Assembly: GCA_937625935.1 (NCBI GenBank)
Contig: OW569354.1
Coordinates: forward strand, 186,001 to 250,000
Origin: Tetramitus jugosus
Taxonomy: Eukaryota; Protista; Heterolobosea
Direction of reading: 5' to 3'
Length of the DNA stretch: 64,000 nt
Part shown: piece by piece, positions 2,465 to 48,216 of the stretch
Position numbering within the stretch: position 1 is the stretch's first letter
Layout: each line of letters opens with the position of its first letter
Program-made: the position numbers and the translations under genes
The notes under the pieces: generated by a model
Database searches by the model: none
Told to the model about the DNA's origin: nothing
The model's input: only the letters and a program-made list of their open reading frames with translations

Positions 2465-2514
2465 ATTCCACGTTGAACAAGTCAGACAGATAGCTTTATT
2501 TCCTCGAATCATCC

Positions 2515-3177: not shown

Positions 3178-3223
3178 TTTTTTGTTTTTGGGCGCGAGAT
3201 CAACAACGGAGAATCAAGTCTGC

Positions 3224-25382: not shown

Positions 25383-27483
25383 TTATTCGTCTGACAACCT
25401 AAACAAAGTGAATCTATCTCTCGATAATTGTCCAGCGAAATTACCCAACGGATGTTCCAGAGCTTTAAAGTTCTCAATGTTATACTTGTGCTGTGATGGT
25501 AGCACCTGTATCGTTGATCCCGTTTGTGGATCAATCAGTTTGACTGAAGAGAATTGAGTGTATGCTAGAATTGTCTTCTGATGGGTGTTCGAGTGGTCTG
25601 AATCATTGACAATATGCAAATCATCACTACTATCGTCGAGCACAAATGTGGGTTGACTGGTCTGTGAATTCGAATGGTATTTCACAGTGTACAATTGCGT
25701 TGGCGACGAGTAATAATCAGGGATAAATTGCTGTCCAATCCGTTGGAAGTAATTTGGTTGTAGTAGAGGCGGTAGTGGTGTTGGTGGTTGATCATGTTGA
25801 GTGAGTTGGGTCATCGGGGAGGCATCAAATGCAGAACGTGTCTGACTCAAGGGGAAGATCAAGTGACGAATAGATCGTGATGTTTGAGTTGCAGGCGAAG
25901 AATATGATGACACACATAACTGACTGATTGGATCGTATTGTGTGTGATAATTCACGCTTGGTCTTCCTTCTGTTGGTAGTGGCAACATTGCTACATCCCA
26001 ATCGATATTATCTGCAGACTTACAAAGGAAGGTGTTGCCATGAGTCTTACCTTTGGCAACTAATAGGCCCGATGTTTTGTCTGCGAAGGGTATGTGCGAT
26101 ATCGATTGAATCTTGTCAATTGGGTTCTGCACAATAAGGGATGAGACAGACTTGCATGTGTTGAATCTTGAATCATAAATATCAATCTGGCCATTTGTGC
26201 TGCCAACTGCAAAGTATGAGGAACCATCATTAAAATGAGTAATGCAGCTGATTGGATGTTTCACCTTGAGATAACCTTGCACATTCCTATTCTTCGTATC
26301 CACGAATAAAATCTCATCCATCGTTGTGCAAATTAAATTTCGCTGTTTCGTGTTATAGAGCAAGTGGGTCACAGTATTGTCTGAAACGATCAAGTCATCT
26401 GTTGTCGAATGAAGGATATTGTAAATCGAAATATTGTTATTGTAGTTGCACACTATAGTGGCTGGATCAACAAAATCGAAAATCTTGGTCGTTCTCGTCA
26501 TTAGTATCGATCGCTTCTCAACATAACTTGGAAATTCTCTATCGCCATCCTTATCCTGTCCACCATTATCAATTGTTCGCCGCTGTCTCTTTGATTGATC
26601 ACACAAAGACATCACTGCACCATATCTCTCTTCGTTGATTAACAGTCTCTTCTTTTGCTTTGATGCATTGTTTTTGTTCTTGACACCAAAGGGTATCGGT
26701 ATTTCATATGAATTCATTTCGCTTCTCAATCCTCTCAAAAAGTTCAAAAATTGATCGTGTTCGGTCGTCCGTTTGTTCTCATCACTCACATTCACAATCA
26801 TATTGTGTCTCGTATTGACAACATCATCGCTATCGTCATGATCGTCCAATTCATGCAACACAACAATCGCCTCTCGACTATTGTTGCCATTGTTCTGATG
26901 AGGTTTTTCACTCTCTTCTTGAACCACAACCTGACAACGCGATTCCAACTCTGCAATGTAATCTTCCATTTTTTGCTTCACAGCATGAAATGCACTCTCG
27001 GCTTGCTTCCTCTTTGTTCTCTCAGCTCGAAATCGTTTTCTGAGCTCCACATTCTCCCGACTCAACTCTCTTCTCATCTCGATTCGAAACACTTCACTCG
27101 TATTGGCACTGAAAAACAGTGGAATAATGTGATGAGTGTTCAGTTTGGCTTTACAGATGGGACACGAATGATTTTGTTGAACCCACTTGGAAATGCAACT
27201 CTTACCAAACAAGTGACCACACGTACAAGCAGCAACACAGTGCTCTCCTTCAGATGACCATGCATTTTGACAAATGATGCAAATATTCTGTTGATGATGT
27301 CATTCATCATCAATGAATGTGTTTGTAGTGTCAGAATGATCATCAAACAAGTGATCCAACAAGTGTACATACACCTTCTTCTTCTTGTTCTGCTAGAGTG
27401 GCACTGGGTTGTTGAATAATTTCAATATCGTCCCGTTGTTGGTTCCCAACATTGACCAATGATGAGGAAGACTGCATGATCAT
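25383..27483 (-). CDS. RFWD3: RING + coiled-coil + WD40 E3 ubiquitin ligase, RFWD3-like (intron 27288-27372)
   Basis: The spliced RING reads CIICQNAWSSEGEHCVAACTCGHLFGKSCISKW...CPIC, with the RFWD3-typical GHLFG. Coiled coil and WD repeats follow (FAVGSTNGQIDIYDSR). Confidence 0.75.
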
Positions 27484-27793
27484 GGGCTTGCTATGCTCTG
27501 TGACTCTTTTTTTTCTTGCTAAACCAAGGTTTTGATCACGGAAATGCACGACGATTACTTGAGACAAAAAAGTCCGATAAAACTACGAAGGACCAGGTGA
27601 CTGATACAACAGCCCAAATCCGCAAGTTTACAAAAAAGAGGTATTATTCAAGTATTAGTTACGATTGGTGATTTTATTTCATTCGTTTGATTTAACAAAT
27701 TATGCCGTTGAGCCGTTGTCGCATTGAACACAAGGGTTGACCTGTGTTCGTATTCTATTGAGGGGAAGTCTTAGGAGTGTAAAGCAACCAATC

Positions 27794-30078
27794 TTAATGG
27801 GAGTGTTCATTGTGACTCATAAATCTAGAGAAGGTGTCATTGATCATCATGACTCGAATAGAAGAAACCAACTTGTCAAAGATATCAATCTCAGCCCGTC
27901 CCTTTTGAATCTGGAACAACTCTGATGATAGAATCCGATGGGCAATGTTCAACTCCTTGGGAGAATTTGGCAACAAGTATGTCTCAACAATCTCTTGTTG
28001 GATCAATATTCTATCATGAGTCGCTTTGAATGATTTATAGTGAGCCACCACCTCTAAGAACTCAAAGTTCTCCAAACTCATCTCCTTGTGACAGAATTCT
28101 CTGAACAATGCTCTTTGTTCTTCATTGGCCATCATTGAATCAAAAATGGATCCCATATGATTCTGATTTTCATCTTGTTGTTGATGCAACAATGCTCGAA
28201 GTCTGTTCTGTTCTTCCATATTCCTTGCCAACACGATATACACATCCAACACTTGATCATCAGAGTATAATTTGACTCGATTACATGTTACCAAAACAGG
28301 AGTCGGATCCTTCAGTCTGCAATCCATGAATGTATCAAAAGTCTTTCCTGTGGAACAAAGTGACTCAAGTTTTTGCATGAGTTCATCAGTCTTAAATTCT
28401 GTGAGTGCAGATGAAAGAGGCATGACTCCTTCAGTGGTACTTGGATCAAAAAGTAACTGCTGATAGAAGGACTTATTGGCACTAATGATGATTCCAGTTA
28501 GACAGTCGACTGTCAAAATAAAATCTGTAATTCCATCCATCACTGCTCTTGCTCTCTGCTCTTCAATAGAAATCTTGTCAATCAAGATTTGAAGCCTTTC
28601 ATGATCATAGGCAAGCTTCTTGTTGGAACTGTCCAAAGCTCCCAGCATGGTGTTAATCTTCTTGGTCAATATTGAAATTTCATCTTGAGCACATTCATCA
28701 ACCTTCAATCTCAGTCCACGATCAATCAGTTTTGCAACATCACTTACTCCATAGGTCAACTTAATAATAGGGGAAAGGACTGCTCTTTCAATGTAAAGGA
28801 TCATGACAATTGAAGTGATGACAACTCCGAGTGAAACCATTCCATAGGCCCAACCAAATGAACGAAGACCCAAGACATAAACATCTCTTTTCATATCTGC
28901 TCTCAACACCAAGTTGTTCTTTCCATACATATCAGTGAACACTTGATAGGAAGATATTGTTTTCTCTGAAGTGGTCTCATTTCCATTGTCCTTCAACCAA
29001 CATTGACGTCCTGCAACATTAACTTGTTTGTGAGCATTTAAGATGGATATTTCCATGATGTTGGCATCAGTCCAAACAGAGTTGTCCCATGTGATAACAG
29101 TACCCCTGTTTCTCTCGATCCGAGACTTCTTGGACTTGATCGCTGGATTCGTTGCCAGATCCGAGGAGAACATGGTGACACAAGATTGAGCTCTCACTGC
29201 AATATTTTTCACAAAGTCTTCATCCGGAGCAACTGCATACAACAAGATACCACTTGGTAGAGGACCTCTCAGTTCTGAACGAATTGGCTGAGCAAACAAA
29301 AAGTACAGAACATTGGCTGAAGTGTACATATATCCAACATTATCTGCATTGAAGTTTGTTGTCAAATTGTTGGCCATCATGGGATGATGTGGCGGAAGGC
29401 TCTCCAACTCTGGCAACAGTGGAAGAGAATTGCCTGTCTTCAGATCATATCCAACCCAAGCTGCTCTCGTTCCATTCAAGAAGTAAAACACACAATAATT
29501 AGCGAGAAGGACATCCCTCACATACTCAAAGTAGTAATTGGAGGCCAAATGTCCATTCATTCGCTCCCTTGTAAAATTGGCCATGACGTCATAAGGCACA
29601 TCCCAATTGGCATTATCTTCAAATATCAGTAGTCTGACGTTAGAACAAGACTTGTTCGAATTGCAACAAAATTGGGATTAAACGAGTACATACTGTCCAC
29701 CACCTTTGAGTGGAGGGCCAATCTGTCATACAGTGCCCTATTGACACGCTTCTGAGTCTCACGGGCATAAAACTTCTCCAAGTTGCGAGAGTTGGTCGAG
29801 AAAATGGACAATAGAATGGCCAAGAATCCTCCCATCATCAACAGGAATAAACACACAAGAATTACAATGGTTCTGAATTGGATACTGCACAGAAATCGAG
29901 TCAGGAACCTCCTTGAGGGTGACATCTTCTTCATTCCATCATCTCTGTTTCCAGCTTGTTCTTCTATCAAGTGTACCACTGATAAGAATTGAGGGCGTTC
30001 TCTGCCTTGTTGAGCAGTTGGTACCTTTGTTCCTGTTCTCGAACGGGTGCCATTCTGTTGTCGTGCGTGGTCATCCAT
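27794..30078 (-). CDS. CHASE4-HAMP-PAS-RGS membrane receptor, copy 1 (intron 29617-29693)
   Basis: TM1 (TIVILVCLFLLMMGGFLAILL); CHASE4-like start (NLEK...RVNRAL...NNANWDVPY); TM2; HAMP (VLSPIIKL...DEISILTKKINTML); PAS (RAVMDGITDFIL...ISANKSF); RGS (FREFCHKEMSLENFEF...KELNI...DTFSRF). Confidence 0.85.
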
Positions 30079-30298
30079 GATCAAAGTTGCTCCTTTTTCT
30101 GTCTTGGATTTGTTGTGGTTTCTTGTTGGAAAGGTGTGAATTGAGAACAGGGGAGGAATGACATTGGTCATGGAATACTTTGTATGGGTTGGGGGGTGGC
30201 GAAAAAAGATCCGCCCAACGGAACTTCTGAACGACACAGAAAAAGTGCACGCGATGATATATGATTTTTGAATGAGCAACAGCGAAAGAAGAAAAGGA

Positions 30299-30596
30299 CT
30301 GACAGGATCCTAAAAGTCTCACTACTGGTTTTAGGTGTACCCACCCAAAGAAAGGTGCTTGAATCAACCGGTGATAGATTGCAGTATTCAACACTTAAGT
30401 TTGCTCTCTTGTTCCTCCTTCGTTGTATCTATCGAGTTCATGACAACAGACACAGTTGTGATCCATGCTCGACAATTCAGCTTCGGCCCCTTAACTTTCG
30501 TCCTGATTGTCAGAGCTCTCGTGTGATACCGTCGTAGTCTTAATCGTAAACGATACCAACACGAGATTGGTAGTGAGACTTTTAGGATCCTATCAG
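30299..30596. repeat. 27-bp inverted repeat (30299-30325 / 30570-30596), 1 mismatch
   Basis: CTGACAGGATCCTAAAAGTCTCACTAC versus the reverse complement CTGATAGGATCCTAAAAGTCTCACTAC. The right arm lies inside the 18S fragment. Confidence 0.9.
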
Positions 30597-30775
30597 AATC
30601 CAAGGGAAACCGTTTAGTTTTTGGGTTCTGGGGAGTATGCTCGCAGGGCTGAAACTTAAAGGAATTGACGGAAAGGCACTACATGAAGTGGAGTATGAGT
30701 AGTGATCTTAGGATGTGAAAATGATTGACAGATTAAGTTGTTGAGTGCTGATGACCTCTCTTTCCTTGATTTTCT
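30481..30775 (+). pseudogene. fragmented, rearranged 18S (SSU) rRNA gene segment
   Basis: 30525-30697 reads GATACCGTCGTAGTCTTAA...TTTGGGTTCTGGGGAGTATG...GCTGAAACTTAAAGGAATTGACGGAA, the universal SSU core. GATTGACAGATT...CTCTTTCCTTGATT follows after a deletion. The SSU segment that normally lies just upstream (AATCAGGACGAAAGTTAAGGGGCCGAAG) is inverted at 30481-30511. Confidence 0.88.
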
Positions 30776-30849
30776 CTTCAATCAACTGTCGGTGCTATGA
30801 ACATCAATATATTCCTTCATGCTCTTTTTGAAGAATTTCAAGGGTCGTA

Positions 30850-33200
30850 GAAGTTTTACGGTCGTTTTTCTAATTTTCCTAGTTGGAGCTCCTCATGACT
30901 TTTAAAAGTCGATCCCTCAACAATACAAAGTGGTATGAACTTTTCGAACAATGAATATAGCAATATTCTTCCCTTCCTCTTTCCTTAACAACATGCAGCC
31001 TTGGAGAACAACAAACAAAGGATCAATTTTTCTTTTTATCGAAAATTAACAAGGTGTCTTATGTGACCTCTTCTCCTCCGTCTAGTGGTACCACTCATAC
31101 TAGCGCTTTCGATAACAGATACTCGGCAAAGCTCAAGGCCTTGAAACACTTGATTCATCAAAACTTGAACGAGATGCACACTTCCTCCTGCTTTTCACCA
31201 CTTGAACTACTCTACAACGATGACAATTAGATGATCAAGAACAAAAGAAACAGTTACACCAAGTCAACATACCTTCCATCTCTTAATCTTATAGTGGAGT
31301 TGTTGTCTTACATCATGTAGCGCATCAATCGAGTACCAGGCTTCTCATGTACTTGTAGTAGCCTTTCTCCTTTATCTTTACTCTTCCAATCACATGCACC
31401 CCGTCCAGCCGAACACCATCAGAGTGAAACACAAATCGTCTCTTGTACAAGCGTCAGTAATAATTGGTTGAGTTCATTGAACAACGTGACAACATTGATA
31501 CTACTTACACTCATTGCATGTAACAATTTCATCGTTCCTTTGTGTGTCGTGTAGTTCAAACGATCTTCGAGATTCTGCAACAAGGGAATAGCCTCGCAAG
31601 TACCTTGATCCACTCGATACGTTCCATGGATGGATCGCAGAATCACTAGGTTAAAACTGTCAAACGGGAATGCTGTGTAGTACCAGAGAGGTCCATGCCT
31701 CTTCACACAATCAACCAAATGGGTGAGAAGATGAACATTTAATGAAACATACCGATCACCATACACTTCCTGGAACTGAGGCACAAAATGTGTCAGCTCC
31801 AGTTGTACTTTATCCAATTGTTGTGTTGTCAGTTCAGGTTAAAGCAGCTCATACAGGGCATTGACCAGAATCATGTGGTGGTCACAATAGCGAGTGCTCG
31901 CTGGAAACAAGTGCTTTGTAAGTCTCGATGTATAGAGCATGAACACAAGACACTCTGATGCTTTAAAATATCGATGATGCTTGATGATTGATCTGAGATT
32001 TCGACGAAACACAGATAGAAGCTGTTGCTGCAAGAGCAATTGACCAAATGATTCCCACATCTGCTTGCTCTCTCTTGCTCCCAATCTGTCGTTGTACTGC
32101 ACGAGTGCCTTGGAGAATGAGAGATTGAAAGAACACCATGAAAATGGAAATGGCAGTAACGAGATAGCTCTTCCACTCTGTGGCACCATCAATAATCACC
32201 AGAAAGGAGTAACCCCCTCTGGTGTCACAGGAGCAGCAATTCTCCTGTAGACTTCACCGTCATAAACGTCACAAATCACATCAGATGATTTGCAATTTCT
32301 CAGGTGATAGTGCTGGGCGAGAGTGTAAAACCTTATATCCACTCTCATCCTGTCAACGAACTGCTGGACCGGATTGTACCAATGGAAACACTCGATGTAA
32401 CAATTCTTGTTGCAAACGCCGTTGCCCGTCACAAAATTGTGCTCACGACAAAAGTAAATCTTGTTCATTCTTGAGTGGTGAGCAAGTCACTTTAAAAACT
32501 TGTGCTTGGATGTCACTAGAGCATTGTTCTTGGGAAGGAACGCCTGGAGGAAGGTCAACAACTTTTCCAAACCTTGCTCAAATTGAGTTGGACCATGAGA
32601 TACAAAATCAAAGTACAAGCAGTATACAAAGAAATGGGAAGATATTGACACATCTTTTGATCCCATAGTGGATCATCACTATGAATCGTGGATATTCCAT
32701 TGGTGTAGTAATCTCCGATGACTGGCCTTGATTCTTGCATCTCGAGCATGGGTTGAGCTTGAGCCAAGTCTTCTACATCAACAGATGAGATTTGACTTCA
32801 ATGAACTCTTCATCACCAAGCTTCACTACCCGAAATCAGCTGTTTGGCATCAGATAGAGGGCACAACCGTGGTGAGTGGTGGGTTTGGGTTCAGTGGAGT
32901 GTTGGGTGTTGCTTGGGCTGTTGAGGAACAACAATCTTGTTGATGATCGACAACACTATATGTTGGATTTTCCAACATGTTCAGCAAAACTTGTGGTCTA
33001 GTTCTTGTTCTTCTCGTTCGATACTTCATAGAAAAGAATCTAGGATGAGGAAGAACTTCAAGGAAATGATTTCTAAGCTCCCTATTCAGAGCATTCTTTC
33101 CGGGGACGAAAGCGACATCGAGATGAGCGATGTTTCGAGGTAATACGGACTCAAAAGTAGGGACTCGTGCTGTTTCATTTTCACAGAGAGTGGTCAAGCT
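30850..33200 (-). mobile_element. decayed CACTA/EnSpm (CMC)-like DNA transposon (frameshifted, internally deleted transposase)
   Basis: Collinear broken motifs: DVICDVYDGEVY, IIDGATEWKS, RNLRSI...FKASECLVFMLY, and NVHLLTHLVDCVKRHGPLWYYTAFPFDSFN. Boundaries are approximate. Confidence 0.75.
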
Positions 33201-33240
33201 TTACTCTGTTGATGTTTGTTTGTTGGAATGGCGTGTTGTA

Positions 33241-33645
33241 CTACGAACTGATAGACACTACAAAGAAAGCTGATTTGAAGAGTGCGTTCGAAGAATGAAT
33301 GTGATCAAGCCCAAGTACATGATCGCACAATTGGACAATACCAATAAATAAACTGATATTCCCAAGTTCCCTGTCATTTGGCAATCCCCTTACTCACCAG
33401 ACCTTAATCCTATCAAGAAGGTCTTCGGATTGATCAAATCTCGCATGAAAGGTTACGAATTTACCAAGGAGTCGCTGCAACAAATTATCCACCAAGTAAT
33501 TCAAAACTTATCAGATGATGTATCCTCTTTGTCCTGCCTGAAAAAAACGAGCGCAAACGTTGTACTTCAAACAACTAAAAGAGTTAGTGTTACACCTCAA
33601 CAAACCTACAATTTCTTTGGTTGTATAATGTGGAGTCTCGAGTGA
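33241..33645 (+). mobile_element. IS630/Tc1/mariner transposase fragment (pseudogene)
   Basis: QLDN...VIWQSPYSPDLNPIKKVFGLIKSR matches the DDE_3 PxSPDLNPIE motif with E->K; in-frame stops are present. Confidence 0.75.
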
Positions 33646-35084
33646 TTCGATGCTTAATTGAATTTGTAGGAGTGGTGATAACAGTCCTGAGCCGAACCGA
33701 GGCATCCCATAAGTGTTAAAACATCAACGAACAACCTTAAATCATCTAGTACAACCAAACAAGTTTTAATGTTTCTTCTTGGGGTGTTTGAGCTGGCCAT
33801 TGTATTATTGTATTTTTTGAGATCGAGTCGTTGATTCTTGAGTTAACTAGTTGGTTTTTCTCGTTGCAAACAGACAAAACTAGCTCGAAGCATTTCATAA
33901 TAGAAAGATCTTTTAAGAAGTGACACTTCATAATGGTTGCAATTGCAAAAAGGAGTCAATCTATTCAAATCTGAGCATGTCCAAAAAAGAACATTAAGAA
34001 TTGATGAGTGACACATTAATGTCTCTGGTCTTTGTGTCCAAACAATACAGAACCGATAGGTGAAGAAACCCTTGATTTAATGAAGGACTTTGATAAATAT
34101 TTTTCAGCCCAAAGAACGAGTATGGAAGTGCTAAGCTGTGTTTTTCCATCATGACCTCATTGTGTTTGCTTCTGTCAGTGCCCGCACAGCAACATTGATG
34201 CATCGTTGACAGGATCATAATCACAAGCAATCAATTGGTGGTAGTTGTCCAGACTAACCGAGTCTGAGATTGCTCACATCACAAATTCAAGTTGGACGCG
34301 TCTGTTCTAGTTTGACAAATGTTAGTTGCATCCCTTTATGCTCACCCAAGCATACATGGTTATATCCTGATTCTCAAACCATTCGAATAAAATCACACAT
34401 ACCCTTCTTACTTAATCACAAGGGGAGTTATCATGGGATTCGAGTGATAGGCTATGGAAACTGTTCCCTGAAGTTTCCGGCAAAACTTATTCGGTTGAAG
34501 GGATGGGAATGATCCATACCGCGTATGTAGATGTTGATAAGACGAGGAGTGCTTTTTCGTTGAAGCTGTCAGGGATGAAGCGTTGGCAACAGAGAGGAAG
34601 AACTCGAGGGATTAATCGCTTGATGTTCGAGTGATTGTATTGGCTTGTGTCCCGAGAGATTTGTTTCATCGACTTTGTCCACACAAGAGAGTACTTGAAA
34701 GTTTTGAATCAAACAGAAGGAATCAATGTGATAGAGTTTGAGCAGTACCACGTGTTGGCTCTCAACAGAAAAAGAAATGTCAAATACCTCACGAAAACTT
34801 TATGGTGGTAACCATCATGATTCAAGAGACCCTCGAAATGCGGTGTATGCATCAACACTACAACCGAAAAATATGTGACTTCATTGCACAGAACTTGTTT
34901 CTTTGGGAACTCGAATCATGATGGTTCTTTGATTTAATTCTGCTAGGTAACCCTTTACCGCTGCTGGAATTCTAAGTTTATTGTTCCAAGTTGAAAGTGT
35001 CGAATTAGTTCTTCAATCGAATTTCATTCAGCTCGTTGTTTCCTATTGGTAGAAAGTCCTAGGAGTAAGAAGCAACTCCCCTAA

Positions 35085-37350
35085 CTAAAGGGAGTGTTCA
35101 TTGTGACTCATAAATCTAGAGAAAGTATCGGTGATCATCATGACTCGGACAGAGGAAACCAACTTGTCAAAGATATCAATCTCAGCCCGTCCCTTTTGAA
35201 TCTGGAACAACTCTGATGATAGAATCCGATGGGCAATGTTTAATTCCTTGGGAGAATTTGGCAACAAGTATGTCTCAACAATCTCTTGTTGGATCAATAT
35301 TCGATCATGAGTCGCTTTGAATGATTTATAGTGAGTCACCACCTCTAAGAACTCAAAGTTCTCCAAGCTCATCTCCTTGTGACAGAATTCTCTGAACATT
35401 GCTCTTTGTTCTTCATTGGCCATCATTGAATCAAAAATGGATCCCATATGATTCTGATTTTCATCTTGTTGTTGATGCAGCAATGCTCGAAGTCTGTTCT
35501 GTTCTTCCATATTCCTTGCCAACACGATATACACATCCAACACCTGGTCATCAGAGTATAGTTTGACTCGATTACATGTTACCAAAACAGGAGTCGGATC
35601 CTTCAGTCTGCAATCCATGAAGGTATCAAATGTCTTTCCTGTGGAACAAAGTGACTCAAGTTTTTGCATGAGTTCATCAGTCTTAAATTCTGTGAGTGCA
35701 GATGAAAGAGGCATGACTCCTTCAGTGGTACTTGGATCAAAAAGTAACTGTTGATAGAAGGACTTATTGGCATTAACGATAATACCAGTTAGACAATCAA
35801 CCATCAGAATAAAATCCGTAATTCCATCCATCACTGCTCTTGCTCTCTGCTCTTCAATCGAAATCTTGTCAATCAGTATTTGAAGCCTTTCATGATCATA
35901 GGCAAGCTTCTTGTTGGAACTGTCCAAAGCTCCCAGCATGGTGTTAATCTTCTTGGTCAATATTGAAATTTCATCTTGAGCACATTCATCGACCTTCAAT
36001 CTCAGTCCACGATCGATCAGCTTTGAAATATCACTCACTCCATAGGTCAACTTAATAATAGGGGAAAGGACTGCTCGTTCAATGTAAAGTATCATGACAA
36101 TTGAAGTGATGACAACTCCGAGTGAAACCATTCCATAGGCCCAACCAAATGAACGAAGACCCAAGACATAAACATCTCTTTTCATATCTGCTCTCAACAC
36201 CAAGTTGTTCTTTCCGTACATATCAGTGAACACTTGATAGGAAGATATTGTTTTCTCTGAAGTGGTCTCATTTCCATTGTCCTTCAACCAACATTGACGT
36301 CCTGCAACATTAACTTGTTTGTGAGCATCTAGAACTGATATCTCCATGATATTGGCATCAGTCCAAACAGAATTGTCCCATGTGATAACAGTACCCCTGT
36401 TTCTCTCGATCCGAGACTTCTTGGACTTGATCGCTGGATTCGTTGCCAGATCCGAGGAGAACATGGTGACACAAGATTGAGCTCTCACTGCAACATTTTT
36501 CACAAAGTCTTCATCTGGCGCAACAGCATACACCAGGATACCACTTGGTAGAGGACCTCTCAGTTCTGAACGAATTGGTTGAGCAAACAAAAAGTACAGA
36601 ACATTGGCTGAAGTGTACATATATCCGACATTATCGGCATTGAAATTTGTTGTCAAATTGTTGGCCATCATGGGATGATGTGGCGGAAGGCTCTCCAACT
36701 CTGGCAACAGTGGAAGAGTGTTGCCTGTCTTCAGATCATATCCAACCCAACCTGCTCTCGTTCCATTCAAGAAGTAAAACACACAATAATTAACCAGAAG
36801 GACATCCCTCAAGTATTCAAAGTAGTAGTTGGAAGCCAAATGACCACTCATTCTCTCCCTTGTAAAATTGGTCATGATATCATATGGCACAAACCAATTG
36901 CAATTATCTTCAAGATCAAGGAATGTCAGAATCACGTGAGCAACAAAAATTGGAAATGTACATACTGTCCAAAACTGTTGAATGAAGGGCTAATCTGTCA
37001 TACAGGGCCCTATTGACACGCTTCTGAGTCTCACGGGCATAAAACTTCTCCAAGTTGCGAGAGTTGGTCGAGAAAATGGACAATAGAATGGCCAAGAATC
37101 CTCCCATCATCAACAGGAATAAACACACAAGAATTACAATGGTTCTGAATTGGATACTGCACAGAAATCGAGTCAGGAACCTCCTTGAGGGTGACATCTT
37201 CTTCATTCCATCATCTCTGTTTCCAGCTTGTTCTTCTATCAAGTGTACCACTGATAAGAATTGAGGGCGTTCTCTGCCTTGTTGATAAGTTGGCACCTTT
37301 GTTGTTCCTGTTCTCGATCGGGTGCCATTCTGTTGTGAGGTGTCACCCAT
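35085..37350 (-). CDS. CHASE4-HAMP-PAS-RGS membrane receptor, copy 2 (intron 36908-36965)
   Basis: Near-identical paralog of copy 1 with the same intron position and an intact frame. Confidence 0.85.
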
Positions 37351-39413
37351 GTTCTCTCTTCGATTTGTTGTTGGTTCTTTTTGAAATTCAACCTGAGATG
37401 ATGGGAAATCACCAAGGTATAAAGAATCCTTTGTATATCCATCGATGTGACAGTTGACGGAATTTTGTCGGGAAAAGGTACCTCTATTTAGGGGTAGTTC
37501 AATCCCTGGAAAAATTCCAACAGTGACCAGGTATTCTTACTAGTTACCTGCACCAGAAGGGAGGAATGCTGGAGCAAGTAACCAGTCAAATCTGCAGTGA
37601 TATTAGTGATTCACCAAGATATCGAAATTCTTGGCGACTTTTGACACGCAAACAATTCAGAACCGATAATCAAACCAATGATCCAAGACATCAAAGCAAG
37701 TCATCCATACAAGTGTAAGACCTAAAAAAAGAGTCACCACTGAGAACCTGTGGTAATCAACAAACTTAAGCTTTCGTTGGCCATCAAAGTCAAGACATGT
37801 TGAGTTACTGAAGTTTAGAATGATCCGTACATGGAGTTAAAAAGTTCACTAGAACCAAGTCAATTGATTGTGATACTGTTCAGAGTATTTGGCACACTGG
37901 AAAGATATATCTACGACCAAGAGAACTAGATCACAGTTATCAAGATATTGAATGAACGGTTGGACTAGGGAAAGCAGTTTTATCAACTAAATGATCGATG
38001 AAGTATAAATCGTTGTATACAATAATGCCCTTCATCATTCCATCAACCAGTCAAGAGCATTATCTAGATATCCCTTAGGACTTCATGCCAATTTTTTGAC
38101 TCAGAAACATACTAATAATTGGCCGAAGGGCATAGATGTCCACTAAAATTCAAAGTGAAAGGAATTCACGTCAATATGTATTACAGTTTGATCAATCAAA
38201 AGAGTAGGGATTAACACTTACTAATCGAAACACAATCATTTATTTATAAACACATATTTTCTCAAAGTAATTTGTTGACTATATCGGCAACCCCTTTACC
38301 TTGTCCTTGATTCATTTTGCCATCATATGCATCGTAGGAAGATTTCTTAATCCCAATTACAAAGATTGGAATCCAAGATGAGCCACTGATCCAAAACCTT
38401 TTCCATCAACTCTCTCTGTGTTATCCTCGTACCTTTTGCCAACTTCGATAGGAGATATGAATTGACCATTGCCATTTTTAGAAAAGCTAAAAATGCTGCG
38501 CTTCTACGACACATTTTTGTGAGGATATATTAGAACTACTGCAGAATCGATCAAACCTATCCACTCCCTGCATCACAAAGTTGTAATGATGGACCATTGA
38601 GGGAATGGTCATCTTGTTCCACAACCTCTTGACCACACACTGGAGACTTAGTTACAAATTCGCTTGTCAAAAAATGACGAGGCAATGATTGACTTCGTGT
38701 GATCAACCAACCATTTGAATTCTTTCCTCTTGAGCTCGTTCTTGAAGATATCTGATGGACGACTTGCATGACATCAAAAAGTATCTACCTCTTCATGCAT
38801 ATCTTGTGCAAGACCAATGCTACCATAGTTATCTGCGACAAAGACATGCTTTTCTGCCTTGATCGGTCAGATCAAGTCCAAAAAATGGGTCGGAAGGGAT
38901 ATAGATTCGCCAATAGTGCCTTAAGAACATGATAGCCGTCTTCAGCAAGTCCCAAAAATTCTTCTTTTCGAGAGGAGTGCGAATCCAAGTATGTTTCATA
39001 TATTTCGGCATTATTATTCTTTAAAATGAGATTTGGTTTTACTTTCTCATTATCTGATTACCACTAAAACACATCTGTCTAATTTATATCGCGCTGGCCA
39101 TCGAAATTTAACCATATTTCTCTTCGACCAATGTCTACTGTCCTTTTTTCTTCTCGTAATGATCAGTAATGGTGGCGGTACTCGTTGTTGAAGTGCTGGG
39201 TGGTAGTTACCATACTTTCAAATTTGTTCTGCACGTAAAAACTAGCGGAATGCCTTGTATTCGTCAGGACGAAAAAAGAAAGCGAGTGATGGTTGTTAGG
39301 ACTGTATGGGGTGACGCAAGGACGTTAGAAATAACAAAACAGTTCATTCTACATTGTACATCATCCACTGCTGTTAGACATATCACTCACTATTACACAT
39401 ACACACACATACA

Positions 39414-39956
39414 ATGGCAAGAGCACCAAGAACACCTCCCAAAATTAATGTAAAGGACATTAAGAGTGTCCAAGAATTGTTGGACAAGTTAACTAGCTTC
39501 TTCAGAGCCATGCTACTGACAATGAGTACGAAGTCTCTTAGAAGAAGATTGACGTATGACAGAGTATTGAGAACGGAACGTGTTGCTATGCCTCGATTGA
39601 TATTTGATCAATTATTTGGCGACTTAACCAACTACAGACCTCTTAGAAAGGTGTATGGAAGTGACAGATCTCGTCAGAAGGTTATCACAACACTGGCACA
39701 GTTCAAGAAGGCTTTCAAGTGCAAGCTACCCGAGAGACTGTTCAAATATCCATACAGATTGAGTAAATTGAAGATACCACTCATTCTCTTCTATGCTGCA
39801 AAGGGTATTTCTGGTTGTGGAGCCATCATGCAATTTCGCGTCACAAATGAAAATGGTCAACTTGTACGTGACATGAGATCAAAGAAGAAGGGAGAGAGTA
39901 AGACAATGAACCTCACTCGTAAGGCATATCTTGCTCAACGTTATACTAATGTTTGA
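39414..39956 (+). CDS. basic orphan ORF, probably carried by the downstream transposon
   Basis: Intact 180-aa Lys/Arg-rich ORF directly upstream of the transposase remnants; no recognised family. Confidence 0.4.
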   Translation: MARAPRTPPKINVKDIKSVQELLDKLTSFFRAMLLTMSTKSLRRRLTYDRVLRTERVAMPRLIFDQLFGDLTNYRPLRKVYGSDRSRQKVITTLAQFKKAFKCKLPERLFKYPYRLSKLKIPLILFYAAKGISGCGAIMQFRVTNENGQLVRDMRSKKKGESKTMNLTRKAYLAQRYTNV

Positions 39957-39959
39957 ATT

Positions 39960-41581
39960 GATTGATGTCAGGATTTTGATGTAATTGAAGTTCAAGATGA
40001 TTTCCCACCAAAAAATCTTAACAACACGAAAAAAATGTTCACAAGTGCTGTTCTCTCTGCTTTTAATGTTAGTGCTCTAGGGAACGATGCCAATGATGCA
40101 TTTGGATTGTACAAATTCTATCAGAGTAGTGGTAAAGCCCAGAACATGAGAGAAAAATTAATCAATTTGAGAAAACGGCAAGTGGATGACTGTAAAAAAA
40201 CCTAATGGATATGAACTAATTGCACACATATGGATAATAATACTACACAGGAGTCTTCGCAAAGAATCACAACAGATAGTAATTACTCTTTTGTAGGTGG
40301 ACGTAGAACAATACAACAGATGGTTAAAGATGAATGTTAATGTTGCACATCAAAGATTTCCACCACTATCTGTCAAGATTGATCTTGATTGCTACCACTC
40401 TGACCCTCTTCATTTTTCTACTGCTGCTGGAAGGGCTCTTGCAGAGTACATAGTAATGAAATCATTGAACAAAGATAGAGAAGATCATCTAGTCGATAAG
40501 AATCATCCAGCAGAATAGAGCAGAAGAGACTATCTCAGTTTTATAGCTTTATTCGAAAATACTGAGAATTCAAAGCGATCAGACTCTCAGTTGAAGCAAA
40601 TTGCAGAGGATTATTATGTGGAGTATAAGCATAATAATGAAACACTTGTGGGTATTTGTCAGTGATACATTGGTTGCAATACAGAATGATTTGGATCGAT
40701 TGTGTATTGGTGTTGATCTGACAAAGGAAAGAACAGATGATAATTATTATAATGTGCATGGTGATTCACTTCTACTATTGTTAATAGCAATGCCAGAAAT
40801 TTCCTACACTCACCTGAGAGAACGTGATACGTTATTATATGAGAGCCTCAAACAGGTTAATCACGTATTCCACAAAACGAAATTGGAAGAAACTGACAAA
40901 ACTGACGTTGGTACTCATTATCATAATGCATTTGACTCCATGACATGTATGCACTCAAGAACATACTTGCATATAGGATGGCATTTTGTACAGAATGTAC
41001 AGAAGGGTATTCCAACTGGAGTATTTACATGTCAAAAGCAAGAACGTACCAACAGAGTTTGTAAACTGGGAGTGCATGAACATACAAACAAAAGAGTACC
41101 CAGTATCGCAGAAGAAATTTACAGATTAGCAGCAGGAATGTATGATCCGTCAACTGAAGAAGCAATTAAGCATGAAAATCTCGGATCACACTATGTAGAT
41201 CAATTTGTTACATGGTATAATAGGAGAAGGGTAACAACATTTAAATATTATGCTTCAGAAGAGGAGAGACCCTCGAGAAAGAGAAGAAGAGAAATCGAAG
41301 CAATTTCTTCAAACAAGAAGGCTAGGTTAGTTCATAAGCGAATGAAAATGTTGAAGAAGAGAGTAGTTTTTATTCCTTCTGTTGAATATGAACAGGAAGA
41401 GACACGAACAGACCCACAGGCTAATGAACTGATGGATGATGACTATGACATTATGGATGAAGAATACGATGAAGAAGAAGAGGAAGAAGTAACAGAAGTA
41501 ACCAGTAATCAATCAGACAGTATGGATGATGAAGACAATGAGGACGAAATGACAACATCTGGAAATGATCCAAATTTCTGA
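39960..41581 (+). mobile_element. decayed Transib/Chapaev (RAG1-core-like) DDE transposase
   Basis: HSDPLHFSTAAGR resembles RAG1 SIDALHCDIG. RTYLHIGWHFVQNVQKGIPTGVFTCQKQERTNRVCK resembles RAG1 NYFHKTLAHV...GSIGAWASEGNESGNK. Acidic tail; the frame is broken by stops. Confidence 0.55.
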
Positions 41582-42772
41582 ATTGGATCTTCCTCCAAAA
41601 ACATCAACATAAAAAGTCATCAAGTCATCAACTAATTGATGTGGTATTTATTGTATATTGTTGAAGTGTAATACTGTATATAGTAATGGATGGCATACGC
41701 TCGTATTGGACAAGTTACACAGGATGTGTTGTGTATTATTGTTGAATAAGAACTAGTAACCATAGGTGCACATAGGACTCGGTTGTGATTAGAAGAATTA
41801 CTTGTTTAATCCTGTATTATACAAATGCTAGTGTCTTTTCATGAGAGCACCGTTGGTGAATGATATGATCAATTGTATGTGAGAATCGCATTTCATTTTG
41901 AGTGACGTTGTAACGTAAGGAATCACAACCGAAGAATTCTTCGGACGATAAATCACGCAAACGACAATGACGCTATTGATGATTGATGAGAAGCTCACTA
42001 GAAATCAAAAGTAATAGACAGCATTCTTATCTCTCCATGCAACTCAATCACCAAGATTTCGACTGTACAACTCATACAGTGTATGCGTTCAGAAGTCAAC
42101 AAATAGATGTAGAAAGTAACAACACTCCTTGAGCCCATACTCATTGTACCAAGCTTGTGGATTTCGACACGTATGTTTTGAGTCGTAGTATTTATTGCAA
42201 TTACATGATCATATGTGTATGGAAATATGATAAACAATATATTATGAACAAGAGTGGTTGTAACTTCAAATGATTAATACTATCAGTCCTTGAACATGTT
42301 TTGATCAGTGCAGTGTCTGGAGGATTGAACTCAGATATAATGAGAGTACAACTACATGTGTCTTTACAGAGGACATTCAAAGTTATAACATGAGATCATC
42401 AATAGATCGATCTACTATCATATTCAACACTGCATCTAAAGTATGAGCTCGGATTATACAACTGATATCTATGTGATAGATAGGTTCTGAATTTTGGTCT
42501 GTAGAAAATCCATCAAACAAGAAATATTTGCAATTATTAGACATTTTCAATGTATCTACATACTCCTGTATTTAAATGTACTCCTATATCAGTCATGTCA
42601 CAACTAAGAATCAGGTCCTGCATTTAACGGTTCGACATCATTAATTGAGCATCTCCAAGTCACACATACATATTGATGATGTATTCTTAATCAATGTAGA
42701 CATAGCAATTGGCCCTTACCTTTTCTTCGTTAGCTGCTGCTTACCTTCACACATAAAAGGAACCATTGGTGA

Positions 42773-43260
42773 CCTGTCGAACAAGATGATGACAATGAGT
42801 GGTTTTCCTGCTCGAGACAGGCATCGAGTAATGAACTCAGAAAATCTTTGACTGTCTATAGCTCTCAGTTGTGTTTACCAGCTCGTAATACTCAATTCCA
42901 TTAAGACTCACGAACATCAACAATGAATAACGCAATTTCACCACTCGTTAGGCATACGAAACCGCTCTGGAACTCTTGGATCAAAAACAAGGTTAAGATT
43001 CTTGCGTCTTCTCCAAAATGTTCTACAATCAAGTATGAGAACAAGAGGACAACCGACTAAAAGAAAAGAAGAGAAAAATTGCTGAAGTTGAGAGCGAATC
43101 GAACTCCAAGTTGAATCTCCCTGAATACTACAACACCACCTCGGTCACCTGTTATGATAAGTATCAGCGCAACTTAAAACTCAAGGGTGTAACAAAAACA
43201 AGGAGATATCCATGTGGCCTGTCGAACAAGATGATGACAATGAGTGGTTTTCCTGCTCGA
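42773..43260 (+). repeat. perfect 43-bp direct repeat (42773-42815, 43218-43260)
   Basis: CCTGTCGAACAAGATGATGACAATGAGTGGTTTTCCTGCTCGA occurs twice, 445 bp apart. Confidence 0.9.
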
Positions 43261-44563
43261 TCCACTTCAAGGGACAAGAATCAGTTTGAAACCTTGATTT
43301 TGTGAATGCTAATCTTGATGCTACTGGACCTCAACTCGAAGAAATCGAGCGAAACAAAAAAGAAGCACAAATGAGAACAAGCATAAGACGTACAATCAGA
43401 TTGTGAAACAATTAGAGCAATCAAGGAAAGCGTACAATGAAGTGCAGCAAGGAAGAATTAAGCAGAAAGAGAAAAATACTACAATGTCTTCTGTGTTCAT
43501 GTCTGGGTTGAATGCAAAAAGACTTGAGCACGAAAAGAGGAAATTCAACATGCCTTGTATGAAGAAGCTGTCCAACTGTTGAAGAAGGGAATTGAGTACA
43601 TTTCCCTCTTGTTGCTCACGCTATCGAAGATGAAGAAACGAGGTTGTGCGAGGAAATGCAACTGATTTAACGGTGATTTACAACTTTTTGGAGGGTTTAA
43701 TTCTGCCGAAGCTCAAAAACAGTCTAAGCGACAGGGAATCTTCTTTGAGAAAAATAAGGATAAAAATCTTACTCCGCTCTTTCAAGTAAAATGTTCAGGA
43801 CTCACAAATATTGATGGCATCCTTTATGGGATGTGGGTTCCTCCCACCTGAATGCCAATCAATCATGAGCCTTACATGTTAATCAAGATATAATTAATCG
43901 ACTTAAAATAAGATAATAATTCTCTCGTCGTTGATAAAGCTCATACAGTTGACCTAACAAAAGGTGATGAGCGAGCTTTCCTTCAATCAAGGGAAGTATC
44001 TTCTCCAGAACAGACTGAATCCAACTCTGAAAACGAGCGGTGGGTCGAACCATTAAGTTCTTGAATAGGAGGCTACATTGCCCGGAATCTGATCCTCATC
44101 GGTGGAACACATCCCACTACAATACTATGGACTATTGTACAGCCCGCTCCTGTTGAGTATTGCCCAATTGAGCGTGTCGAAATGTCAGACTATGCTGTGT
44201 CATGTCATCTGACATAGGTGTTTGTACAATACTTAAATACAACAAACGAGTTTCACAATGATGAGTGTGGAATTGCTTATGTTTATGTGAAAATTGATAA
44301 TGAAGTCTAACTCGCAACCCAAAAGATCATGTGTAAATCACTAGCAATGATATATGGAATCCACACTCGAAGATGCATTAGATAATTTTGAAGGCTGAGA
44401 AATATCATTGATTATATCTTCCAATTTGACGATAATGAACAAAGTTCAATCATTCGGTGCAATGAACATTGCGGTTGCAATTCACAATGAATTGGAAATA
44501 CAATAGTCCCTGAGACCATCATTTTCTATTGAGAGAAAATCCTAGTAGTGAAGACCAACCACC

Positions 44564-46865
44564 TTATTGTGAGTGTCCATTGTGACTCATAAATCTAGAG
44601 AAGGTGTCATTGATCATCATGACTCGAATTGAAGAAACCAACTTGTCAAAGATATCAATCTCAGCCCGTCCCTTTTGAATCTGGAACAACTCTGATGATA
44701 GAATCCGATGGGCAATGTTTAATTCCTTGGGAGAATTTGGCAACAAGTATGTCTCAACAATCTCTTGTTGGATCAATATTCGATCATGAGTCGCTTTGAA
44801 TGATTTATAGTGAGCCACCACCTCTAAGAACTCAAAGTTCTCCAAACTCATCTCCTTGTGACAGAATTCTCTGAACAATGCTCTTTGTTCTTCATTGGCC
44901 ATCATTGAATCAAAAATGGATCCCATATGATTCTGATTTTCATCTTGTTGTTGATGCAACAATGCTCGAAGTCTGTTCTGTTCTTCCATGTTCCTTGCCA
45001 ACACGATATACACATCCAACACTTGATCATCAGAGTATAGTTTGACTCGATTACATGTTACCAAAACAGGAGTCGGATCCTTCAGTCTGCAATCCATGAA
45101 GGTATCAAATGTCTTTCCTGTGGAACAAAGTGACTCAAGTTTTTGCATGAGTTCATCAGTCTTAAATTCTGTGAGTGCAGATGAAAGAGGCATGACTCCT
45201 TCAGTGGTACTTGGATCAAAAAGTAACTGTTGATAGAAGGACTTATTGGCACTAATGATGGTTCCAGTTAGACAATCGACTGTCAAAATAAAATCTGTTA
45301 TGCCGTCCATCACTGCCCTTGCTCTCTGCTCTTCAATAGAAATCTTGTCAATCAGTATTTGAAGCCTTTCATGATCATAGGCAAGCTTCTTGTTGGAACT
45401 GTCCAAAGCTCCCAGCATGGTGTTAATCTTCTTGGTCAATATTGAAATTTCATCTTGAGCACATTCATCGACCTTCAATCTCAGTCCACGATCAATCAGT
45501 TTTGCAACATCACTTACTCCATAGGTCAACTTAATAATAGGGGAAAGGACTGCTCTTTCAATGTAAAGGATCATGACAATTGAAGTGATGACAACTCCGA
45601 GTGAAACCATTCCATAGGCCCAACCAAATGAACGAAGACCCAAGACATAAACATCTCTTTTCATATCTGCTCTCAACACCAAGTTGTTCTTTCCGTACAT
45701 ATCAGTGAACACTTGATAGGAAGATATTGTTTTCTCTGAAGTGGTCTCATTTCCATTGTCCTTCAACCAACATTGACGTCCTGCAACATTAACTTGTTTG
45801 TGAGCATCTAGAACTGATATCTCCATGATATTGGCATCAGTCCAAACAGAATTGTCCCATGTGATAACAGTACCCCTGTTTCTCTCGATCCGAGACTTCT
45901 TGGACTTGATCGCTGGATTCGTTGCCAGATCCGAGGAGAACATGGTGACACAAGATTGAGCTCTCACTGCAATATTTTTCACAAAGTCTTCATCTGGAGC
46001 AACAGCATACACCAGGATACCACTTGGTAGAGGACCTCTCAGTTCTGAACGAATTGGTTGAGCAAACAAAAAGTACAGAACATTGGCTGAAGTGTACATG
46101 TATCCGACATTATCTGCATTGAAATTTGTTGTCAAATTGTTGGCCAGCAAGGGATGATGTGGAGAAAGGCTCTCCAACTCTGGCAACAGTGGAAGGGTGT
46201 TGCCTGTCTTCAGGTCAAACCCAACCCAAGCTGCTCTCGTTCCATTCAAGAAGTAAAACACACAATAATTAGCCAAGTGAATATCTCTCACATATTCAAA
46301 ATAGTAATTTGAAGCCAAGTATTCATCCATCCTCTCGCTTGTAAAGTTGGCAACCGCGTCATAAGTCATATCCCAATTTCCGTAATCTTCAAATCACATT
46401 CAAGCATTAAAATTCAGATTAGAATCATGTAAACAAAACTCAGAAGTATGAAGAATGCCTATACGAGTACATACTGTCCAAGACTGTTGAATGAAGGGCC
46501 AATCTGTCATACAGTGCCCTATTGACACGCTTCTGAGTCTCACGGGCATAAAACTTCTCCAAGTTGCGAGAGTTGGTCGAGAAAATGGACAAGAGAATGG
46601 CCAAGAATCCTCCCATCATCAACAGGAACAAACACACAAGAATTACAATGGTTCTGAATTGGATACTGCACAGAAATCGAGTCAGGAACCTCCTTGAGGG
46701 TGACATCTTCTTCATTCCATCTCCATTTCCAGCTTGCTCCATCAAGTTGACCACTGATAAGAATTTGGGATGTTCTCTCTCATGGTGTTGTTGAGAGGAT
46801 GTTTGGAGTAGCTTTGTTCCAGTTCTAGAACGAGTAACATTCTGTTGTTGTGAGGTGTCAACCAT
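44564..46865 (-). CDS. CHASE4-HAMP-PAS-RGS membrane receptor, copy 3 (intron 46387-46474)
   Basis: Near-identical paralog with the same intron position and an intact frame. Confidence 0.85.
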
Positions 46866-47299: not shown

Positions 47300-48121
47300 T
47301 CACGGAGACCGAGGAACAACAGATGAAACTTCTCGAGAAATCAATTTGGTGGCTCGGCCTGTTTTCATCCAGTAATCTGCGAGAGGGTCAATCTGAGGGA
47401 GGTCTATATCTTCTCGACTCTTCCTTCTCTCCTCGGTACTAATGCCATAGTGATCATCCCTCTCCTGCACCAATTTATCATCCAGTTGACCATCGGACGT
47501 GAAAGCCATCATGAGATTTGGAATGCCATATGGGAAGGGGTCTCCACGGTCTATTTGCCAAGTGTGAAAAGTTTTGCCATAGGTTCTCACGAGGTCCTTC
47601 ATGAATGCGTGTTCAGCAACATAAGGAATTCTCGGAGCAATTAATTCTCCAGATTTCACTTCATAAACATGACTATGCCACAACTTCTTCTCTTCTTCTG
47701 GAAATGAAGAAAACACTTTCTCCGATACAATGTATTCAATACCAATCAACTTGGCCTTGGGTCCATCCGAATCATAAATAACACATTGTGCCAAGTCATC
47801 ACTAAGATGGGAACAATAATGATGAGCAATAACTTGTCGATCCAACTCACCACTGTAGCAATGAAATCCACATACATGGGTGTGAATTTCTTTGATTGGT
47901 GTAAAACGTTGAAGAATGGAAGAGCCCGTCTCGAGGACATTCTTCTTCATTGACTTGCTACTATCTAGGAAGGGAAGATTTGCCAAAGGAATAGGTTGTC
48001 CGAAGCAAGTCAAGAAGTTGGAGTCGTATGCTTCATCTTCTTCTCCGCTTCTTCTCTTGTTGATGTGAATAGAAGAACCAATAAGATAGCCACCAATGAA
48101 AGCAGGAATAATTCTCTTCAT
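47300..48121 (-). CDS. oil body-associated protein / DUF1264 family
   Basis: HVCGFHCY...RQVIAHHYCSH...QCVIYDSD...LIGIEYIVSE...LWHSHVYEVKSG...TYGKTFHTWQIDRGD. Confidence 0.9.
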   Translation of the reverse strand: MKRIIPAFIGGYLIGSSIHINKRRSGEEDEAYDSNFLTCFGQPIPLANLPFLDSSKSMKKNVLETGSSILQRFTPIKEIHTHVCGFHCYSGELDRQVIAHHYCSHLSDDLAQCVIYDSDGPKAKLIGIEYIVSEKVFSSFPEEEKKLWHSHVYEVKSGELIAPRIPYVAEHAFMKDLVRTYGKTFHTWQIDRGDPFPYGIPNLMMAFTSDGQLDDKLVQERDDHYGISTEERRKSREDIDLPQIDPLADYWMKTGRATKLISREVSSVVPRSP

Positions 48122-48216
48122 CTCGTTTTTTAGTGAGATCAACGGTGCCTTGGTCCGTATATTTTTACTTTTTGTTGGATATCTTTATCATCTGACGAGA
48201 AAACTGACAAAAACCT

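Follow-up and report, generated by a model that had tools for sequence, protein, structure and literature searches.

Two kinds of described system resemble the genes reported here. In the seven-transmembrane (7TM) RGS receptors, represented by Arabidopsis AtRGS1 and by a family in Naegleria fowleri (PMC9283941, PMC3386157), a membrane receptor carries a C-terminal, cytoplasmic RGS box that acts as a GTPase-activating protein (GAP). In N. fowleri, self-activation occurs in G-alpha-5 and G-alpha-7, on which the 7TM-RGS domains act as GAPs (PMC9283941). In bacteria, CHASE4-HAMP-PAS modules form the input of kinases, GGDEF/EAL proteins and adenylate cyclases (e.g., PA2072/IsmP; PMC12625894, PMC10904736), and in PA2072 the CHASE4 domain detects ATP and Fe3+ outside the cell via changes in dimerisation (PMC12625894). 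We analysed a 64,000-nucleotide stretch of the Tetramitus jugosus genome (contig OW569354.1, positions 186,001 to 250,000 of the forward strand; hereafter the window, in whose own numbering positions are given). It contains three tandem genes, each predicted to encode a receptor that joins the CHASE4-HAMP-PAS input module, in the bacterial order, to a C-terminal RGS domain.

The window proteins share with the 7TM-RGS receptors not only this overall plan but also the proposed logic, in which deactivation acts on G-alpha subunits that load GTP without a G protein-coupled receptor (GPCR), and N. fowleri likewise belongs to the Heterolobosea. They differ in their input, which is a two-transmembrane (two-TM) CHASE4-HAMP-PAS sensor and not a seven-helix bundle. 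The relay, which in AtRGS1 involves endocytosis and phosphorylation, would here depend on the mechanics of HAMP and coiled coils within a dimer. The likeness to bacterial CHASE4 proteins rests on sequence (E 1e-11 to 1e-17) and on the fold of the ectodomain (8wct). In contrast to those proteins, the window genes have the eukaryote-specific RGS domain as output instead of a kinase, cyclase or phosphodiesterase, and they possess spliceosomal introns, N-glycosylation sequons and a conserved pair of ectodomain cysteines.

Three tandem genes for putative receptors

The assembly to which the window belongs is a 26.35-Mb eukaryotic genome with a G+C content of ~41%. Within 27794-46865, a range bounded by the copy 1 stop codon and the copy 3 ATG, lie three intact, paralogous two-exon genes, all on the minus strand:

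27794-30078, minus strand: copy 1, 735 amino acids; start codon at 30078; exon 1 29694-30078, intron 29617-29693 (77 nucleotides, nt), exon 2 27794-29616
35085-37350, minus strand: copy 2, 735 amino acids; start codon at 37350; exon 1 36966-37350, intron 36908-36965 (58 nt), exon 2 35085-36907
44564-46865, minus strand: copy 3, 737 amino acids; start codon at 46865; exon 1 46475-46865, intron 46387-46474 (88 nt), exon 2 44564-46386

The 3' exon measures 1823 nt in each copy and the 5' exon 385-391 nt, and the protein lengths (735, 735 and 737) were computed from the coordinates. All three introns are GT..AG introns of phase 1, in which the donor reads GTATGT and the acceptor ..TTGAAG. No internal stop was found in any of the three copies, and all frames are open. 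A sequence-only reading of the window had proposed three intact genes with the order TM1-CHASE4-TM2-HAMP-PAS-RGS. The gene structures bear out the first part of this proposal, and family-level Pfam matches, hydropathy and an AlphaFold model support the second. In each predicted protein, a cytoplasmic N-terminus leads into TM1 and a two-lobed ectodomain; TM2 is followed by HAMP, a signalling helix and PAS, and a linker helix connects PAS to RGS. The modules are placed as follows:

TM1, minus strand: copy 1 29800-29868, copy 2 37072-37140, copy 3 46581-46649; hydropathy peak 3.03, in exon 1
Ectodomain (intron included), minus strand: copy 1 28859-29799, copy 2 36150-37071, copy 3 45629-46580; CHASE4 type, Cache superfamily
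TM2, minus strand: copy 1 28790-28858, copy 2 36081-36149, copy 3 45560-45628; from hydropathy, in exon 2, inside model helix 238-291
HAMP, minus strand: copy 1 28634-28786, copy 2 35925-36077, copy 3 45404-45556; directly after TM2
Cytoplasmic PAS, minus strand: copy 1 28226-28549, copy 2 35517-35840, copy 3 44996-45319
RGS, copy 1, minus strand: 27815-28144; six-frame match
RGS, copy 2, minus strand: 35106-35435; six-frame match
RGS, copy 3, minus strand: 44585-44914; Pfam match at 59 bits, also six-frame match

The RGS output and the bacterial-type sensor

The identity of the RGS domain is unambiguous. Its Pfam profile (PF00615) scored 56.1-59.2 bits in all three copies, against a cut-off of 23.9 bits. 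Sequence matches in the PDB were RGS16, RGS8, RGS5, RGS18 and RGS2, with RGS16 and RGS8 at E 4e-7. The modelled domain superposed with a root mean square deviation (rmsd) of 1.4-1.5 Å over 110 residues on G-alpha-bound RGS8 and RGS16, in the complexes RGS8-Gi-alpha-3 (2ode), RGS16-Gi-alpha-1 (2ik8) and RGS16-Go-alpha (3c7k). The motifs EMSLENF, ELNI and DTFSRF, in which the sequence-only reading had seen the retained GAP residues, are present and align with the corresponding positions of RGS16. In the same alignment, equivalents of the G-alpha contact residues Ser85, Glu87, Asn88, Asn128, Asp163 and Arg167 of RGS4 are all present, in the numbering of established work on RGS4 and Gi-alpha-1. 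Counted over the relatives with a residue at the position in question, the contact residues are Ser85 in 30/46, Glu87 in 37/46, Asn88 in 39/46, Asn128 in 39/45, Asp163 in 33/42 and Arg167 in 34/41. The protein terminates 6 residues past the RGS domain, with no further output domain after it, and no RGS match was found in 14 prokaryotic control genomes. As judged from the sequence, the domain is R4-like and retains its G-alpha contact residues.

A basic, cytoplasmic N-terminal region of ~70 residues precedes TM1. The ectodomain is made up of a stalk helix, encoded by the last part of exon 1, and two lobes. In the model, the membrane-distal lobe is PAS-like with five strands, and the membrane-proximal one is smaller. 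Four N-x-S/T sequons lie between TM1 and TM2. Among 30 relatives the Cys140/Cys200 pair is invariant, and Trp176, Arg198, Arg214, Asp223, Arg233 and Asp235 are near-invariant. The sequons and the Cys pair fit an extracellular domain with a disulfide; with the ectodomain outside, the RGS domain would therefore be cytoplasmic, as needed to meet G-alpha. The receptor probably has type-II topology, resides in the plasma membrane and forms a homodimer.

The CHASE4 profile (PF05228) scored 26.8 bits on copy 3 (cut-off, 26.2 bits; 31.9 bits in the six-frame search) and 14.9 bits on copy 1, and it gave no match on copy 2; the first ~16 profile positions fall in exon 1, outside the exon 2 query. When the ectodomain was folded alone, AlphaFold returned a predicted local distance difference test score (pLDDT) of 86.5 and a predicted TM-score (pTM) of 0.83. 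A Foldseek search with this model recovered only bacterial and archaeal double-Cache/PDC sensors, including dCache chemoreceptor domains. An independent structural aligner gave Z-scores of 8.4-9.1 against LuxQ, vpHK1S-Z8 and DctB. Against the solved CHASE4 domain of Pseudomonas aeruginosa IsmP/PA2072 (8wct) it gave a Z-score of 8.1, with 3.4 Å over 157 residues, the lowest rmsd among the two-lobed matches. The position of the ectodomain and its two-lobed form agree with the published description of PA2072 CHASE4 (PMC12625894).

HAMP (residues 272-322) follows TM2 (248-270). Its profile (PF00672) scored 14.3 bits on copy 3, below the 25-bit cut-off, with a match that spans profile positions 4-51 of 53. 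The translation carries the HAMP signature, a Pro in the first amphipathic segment (AS1) and D-E-I-x-x-L-x-x-x-I-N-x-M in the second (AS2). This signature is nearly invariant across the family, 49 of 50 sequences retaining Glu307 and Asn316. The model shows a helix up to residue 291, a loop at 292-306 and a helix from 307. PAS (PF00989) scored 19.1 bits on copy 3, against a cut-off of 22.6 bits. It was modelled with five strands (360-365, 370-374, 421-425, 433-446 and 449-460), and its fold matches 3bwl_B with a TM-score of 0.80 and an rmsd of 2.5 Å in Foldseek.

Bacterial sensors relay signals through continuous helices between their modules. In the AlphaFold model of exon 2 (pLDDT 82.7), continuous helices likewise run from TM2 into HAMP AS1, from AS2 through a 50-residue signalling helix into PAS, and through a 30-residue linker from PAS to RGS. 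Foldseek with this model returned a WalK sensor-kinase model as the best match, followed by chemoreceptor models, PAS domains and RGS domains.

Paralogs, relatives and divergence of the copies

Three further paralogs in the same genome, with 35-39% identity over residues 4-598, pass the Pfam thresholds for CHASE4, HAMP, PAS and RGS, each at the position homologous to that in the window proteins. Scores among them include 32.3 bits for CHASE4 and 25.3 bits for HAMP in L002, and 34.6 bits for HAMP and 22.9 bits for PAS (over the cut-off) in L004. A genome-wide count, which the sequence-only reading had suggested, comes to six CHASE4-HAMP-PAS-RGS genes, three in the window plus C3, C30 and C31. 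Two CHASE4-HAMP adenylate/guanylate cyclase genes lie head to head on contig C39 (L008:1078-3243, minus strand, and L008:3584-5314, plus strand), the cyclase paralog L008 scoring 55.8 bits for CHASE4 and 36.5 bits for HAMP. Three CHASE4-HAMP-PAS paralogs (L005:1698-3926, L006:1149-3350 and L007:906-3065) have 28-31% identity to the window sensor; no recognisable output domain was found in their open frame or the next one. The CHASE4-HAMP module thus feeds at least two outputs and is modular in the bacterial manner.

The cytoplasmic half is reused as well. Four CHASE-PAS-RGS genes (L010, L011, L014 and L016) and three MHYT-PAS-RGS genes (L012, L013 and L015) have 26-29% identity to the window protein over residues 322-595, and HAMP was not detected in any of them. 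They resemble the window genes in the PAS-linker-RGS unit behind a bacterial-type sensor and differ in the sensor itself, which is CHASE or the membrane-embedded MHYT. Since PAS-linker-RGS recurs with three sensor types, it constitutes a cassette common to three bacterial-type membrane sensors. Genome-wide, RGS matches number ~130, and at least 20 G-alpha matches exceed the Pfam cut-off. A single clade of sensor-linked RGS domains was considered and dropped, since the RGS boxes of RGS-only paralogs (30-32%) show no less similarity than those of the PAS-RGS paralogs.

Outside the genome, a phmmer search with the sensor half against 1.8 billion proteins gave 1676 matches at E <=0.001, the best ~50 of which align over the entire sensor half; a word-indexed protein search gave two matches. 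In an alignment of 50 sequences (44 phmmer matches, the three window copies and the three paralogs), RGS was found in 42/50, CHASE4 in 36/50 and HAMP in 29/50. The next phmmer tier (E 1e-11 to 1e-17) consisted of canonical CHASE4-HAMP-PAS proteins in 10/10 sampled, with CHASE4 at 118-151 bits and a kinase, GGDEF/EAL/HD or cyclase output. Alignment to these bacterial-type proteins runs chiefly over the proximal lobe, TM2 and HAMP, at about 25-35% identity. The sequence-only reading had tied the input module to histidine kinases and diguanylate cyclases; the sampled proteins agree with this and add adenylate cyclases. The searches for CHASE4/Cache and HAMP, on which that reading had staked its case, returned matches.

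The named relatives are all Heterolobosea, from Naegleria gruberi, Naegleria lovaniensis, Willaertia magna and Acrasis kona, and the rest come from metagenomes. The family entries are:

XP_002670055.1 and XP_002670222.1: N. gruberi
XP_044549017.1: N. lovaniensis
KAL9651711.1: W. magna
KAL0484208.1: A. kona

These proteins have the same architecture as the window genes, with 28-33% identity across the whole sensor part. They are distant paralogs or orthologs, in contrast to the recent local triplication in the window, and are annotated merely as "predicted protein", "RGS domain-containing" or "HAMP domain-containing". The closest outside relative, at 41% identity, lies on a 4.5-kb metagenome contig (JGI metagenome 3300062347; L001:804-1328 and 1297-3198). 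It also has two exons, and its GTATGT donor, found just past an A-N-W motif, lies a few codons further downstream than the intron of the window genes.

Taken together, the paralogs, the relatives, the links to bacterial-type proteins and the structural matches confirm, at the level of sequence and model, the identity of the CHASE4, HAMP and PAS modules. The architecture has been in databases under generic names since the Naegleria genome of 2010 and is never characterised in the literature that we found. A census of the Cache superfamily published in 2016 listed a single Cache protein in Naegleria, an adenylate cyclase, and no RGS outputs for CHASE4 (PMC4822843). The divergent CHASE4-RGS and CHASE-RGS families in Naegleria, Willaertia and Acrasis suggest that this census was an undercount. 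The N. fowleri G protein study mentioned 79 further RGS proteins, with no reference to HAMP or CHASE (PMC9283941).

Expression of the window genes was seen in soil metatranscriptomes. The copy 3 junction 46386/46475 is present in contigs from three independent runs; the splice removes 88 bases whose plus-strand ends read CT..AC, which is exactly the predicted GT..AG intron, and in a DNA-type run that covers the same site the intron is retained (unspliced). The predicted spliced junction of copy 1 was reproduced by a loose contig end in one RNA run. The genes are transcribed and spliced: it is the splice, and not mere presence in an RNA library, that shows transcription.

Exon 2 is 95.0-95.8% identical between pairs of copies, with no indels or stops. 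The proportion of synonymous differences (pS) is 0.13-0.15 in these pairs, and the ratio of the nonsynonymous to the synonymous proportion (pN/pS) is 0.12-0.21, which indicates purifying selection on all three copies. Amino-acid differences are concentrated within ~80 residues from the start of exon 2 (inside the 45650-46386 region in copy 3 and its equivalents), a stretch that the model assigns to the membrane-distal lobe, as its N-terminal helices and first strands. In the most variable part of the ectodomain pN/pS is about 0.2-0.3, and it is lower elsewhere. Across the 300 nt that encode the proximal lobe, copies 2 and 3 show zero differences, and pS is 0.24 in an adjoining segment; this mosaic divergence points to gene conversion between copies.

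Similarity between the copies, at 91.5-92.4% including introns, spans 27753-30078, 35039-37350 and 44522-46865. It begins ~40 nt beyond the stop codon and stops exactly at the ATG, so each copy has its own, unrelated 5' flank, and the promoters of the three copies may differ. The three copies are a recent, lineage-specific local triplication, partly homogenised by gene conversion.

The neighbours on the minus strand are a RING and RFWD3-like WD40 protein (25383-27212), a DUF1264 protein at 246 bits (47300-48142) and a TMEM62-like metallophosphoesterase (48217-50475). No obvious functional tie between these flanking genes and the receptors was seen. A search of 27000-48000 with Rfam found no RNA family at the gathering threshold.

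Proposed regulated deactivation of G-alpha and its alternatives

We consider it reasonably probable that the window genes encode a dimeric, bacterial-type two-TM receptor GAP that sets the level of G-alpha-GTP by regulated deactivation. In such a receptor, a small ligand or ion would bind the CHASE4-type ectodomain or alter its dimer packing. The change would pass through TM2 to the HAMP four-helix bundle and from there, by way of the signalling helix, to the PAS domain in the cytoplasm; it would reach the RGS domain through the ~30-residue helical linker. Access of the RGS domain to membrane G-alpha-GTP, or its GAP activity on it, would be altered, with either sign of regulation. We infer dimerisation, control by a ligand and the direction of that control, GAP activity, the G-alpha target and independence from GPCRs; in particular, switching of the GAP by a ligand, as put forward in the sequence-only reading, goes beyond what sequence demonstrates. 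The self-activating G-alpha subunits and 7TM-RGS GAPs of N. fowleri lend the proposal indirect support (PMC9283941).

The helices alpha-1 to alpha-4 of the distal lobe form much of the dimer interface in PA2072 (PMC12625894). By analogy, variation between the copies in this region might therefore tune the choice of partner as well as the choice of ligand.

Several points weigh against a ligand-controlled receptor GAP. Taken by themselves, the window copies give CHASE4, HAMP and PAS scores that are under the Pfam cut-offs or barely reach them, and all searches and folds were run on single exons. The ectodomain Z-scores of 8-9 are middling by the aligner's own guidance and corroborate, but do not prove, the fold. 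Self-activation of G-alpha is documented in N. fowleri; in T. jugosus, G-alpha subunits are predicted from gene matches. Literature searches (RGS with CHASE4, HAMP, Naegleria and Acrasis), with a 2011 comparative survey of G proteins outside their reach, found no description or functional study of the architecture, as the sequence-only reading had stated for functional characterisation. Furthermore, RGS folds with conserved residues can be G-alpha binding modules instead of GAPs, and PAS could be the actual sensor.

RGS-RhoGEF and GRK2 are examples of RGS-containing proteins that recruit activated G-alpha. If the RGS domain of the window proteins were a binding or anchoring module of this sort, the receptor would be a scaffold or effector that recruits active G-alpha, with the sensor controlling its localisation or partners. 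RGS-homology domains of GRK2 do occur among the weaker PDB sequence matches, an RGS-RhoGEF of N. fowleri binds G-alpha as an effector (PMC9283941), and the ~130 RGS matches in the genome make functional diversification likely. We nevertheless regard a pure binding role as unlikely: the top sequence and structure matches are GAPs of the R4 class (RGS16, RGS8 and RGS2; rmsd 1.4 Å), the GAP-defining equivalents of Asn128 and Glu87-Asn88 are retained in most relatives, and the RGS domain is not followed by another output domain, the end coming 6 residues later.

About equally improbable, in our view, is a receptor whose main sensor is the cytoplasmic PAS domain, detecting redox state, a metabolite or light through a cofactor, so that an intracellular state is reported to G proteins and the ectodomain serves for dimerisation and anchoring. 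The presence of PAS-linker-RGS behind CHASE4-HAMP, CHASE and MHYT suggests that PAS-RGS is a functional cassette, and PAS is better conserved among the three copies than the distal ectodomain. A cofactor motif, however, is not evident in PAS, and the ectodomain is under purifying selection, with its invariant Cys pair and near-invariant residues across 30 relatives. In bacterial CHASE4-HAMP-PAS proteins of the same order, it is the periplasmic domain that senses the ligand (PMC12625894).

That the copies have no function in the amoeba, being duplicates in decay, a product of misassembly or contamination from bacteria, is hardly credible, for although the three are very similar to one another, open frames together with a pN/pS of 0.12-0.21 (at a pS of 0.13-0.15) rule out pseudogenes, the ~5% divergence of exon 2 and the distinct 5' flanks rule out an assembly duplication, and canonical spliceosomal introns, the RGS output and spliced transcripts rule out contamination.

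A wider picture can also be drawn, which we offer tentatively as one possibility. Much heterolobosean chemosensing would proceed via one-component-style receptor GAPs, with swappable CHASE4-HAMP, CHASE or MHYT sensors placed on a common PAS-RGS cassette that deactivates self-activating G-alpha subunits. The tandem copies in the window would then be freshly diverging members, whose differing N-terminal helices in the distal lobe would retune them for ligand or against cross-dimerisation.

Experimentally known receptor GAPs are limited to the 7TM-RGS proteins of plants and Naegleria fowleri, and the family described here offers a testable second design. If the wider picture holds, there would be a second, independent means of GPCR-free G protein control, in which the mechanics of bacterial transmembrane signalling are grafted directly onto heterotrimeric G proteins. 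In this design an RGS domain would be driven by the HAMP/PAS relay, whose workings in bacteria are well understood, and chimeras of bacterial sensors and G protein regulators would become possible. An external chemical could in this way turn G proteins off without a classical GPCR. These results also suggest that extracellular sensing of the Cache type in Heterolobosea is much richer than the census reported (PMC4822843), and the presence of relatives in Naegleria gives the family a bearing on environmental sensing by free-living as well as pathogenic amoebae.

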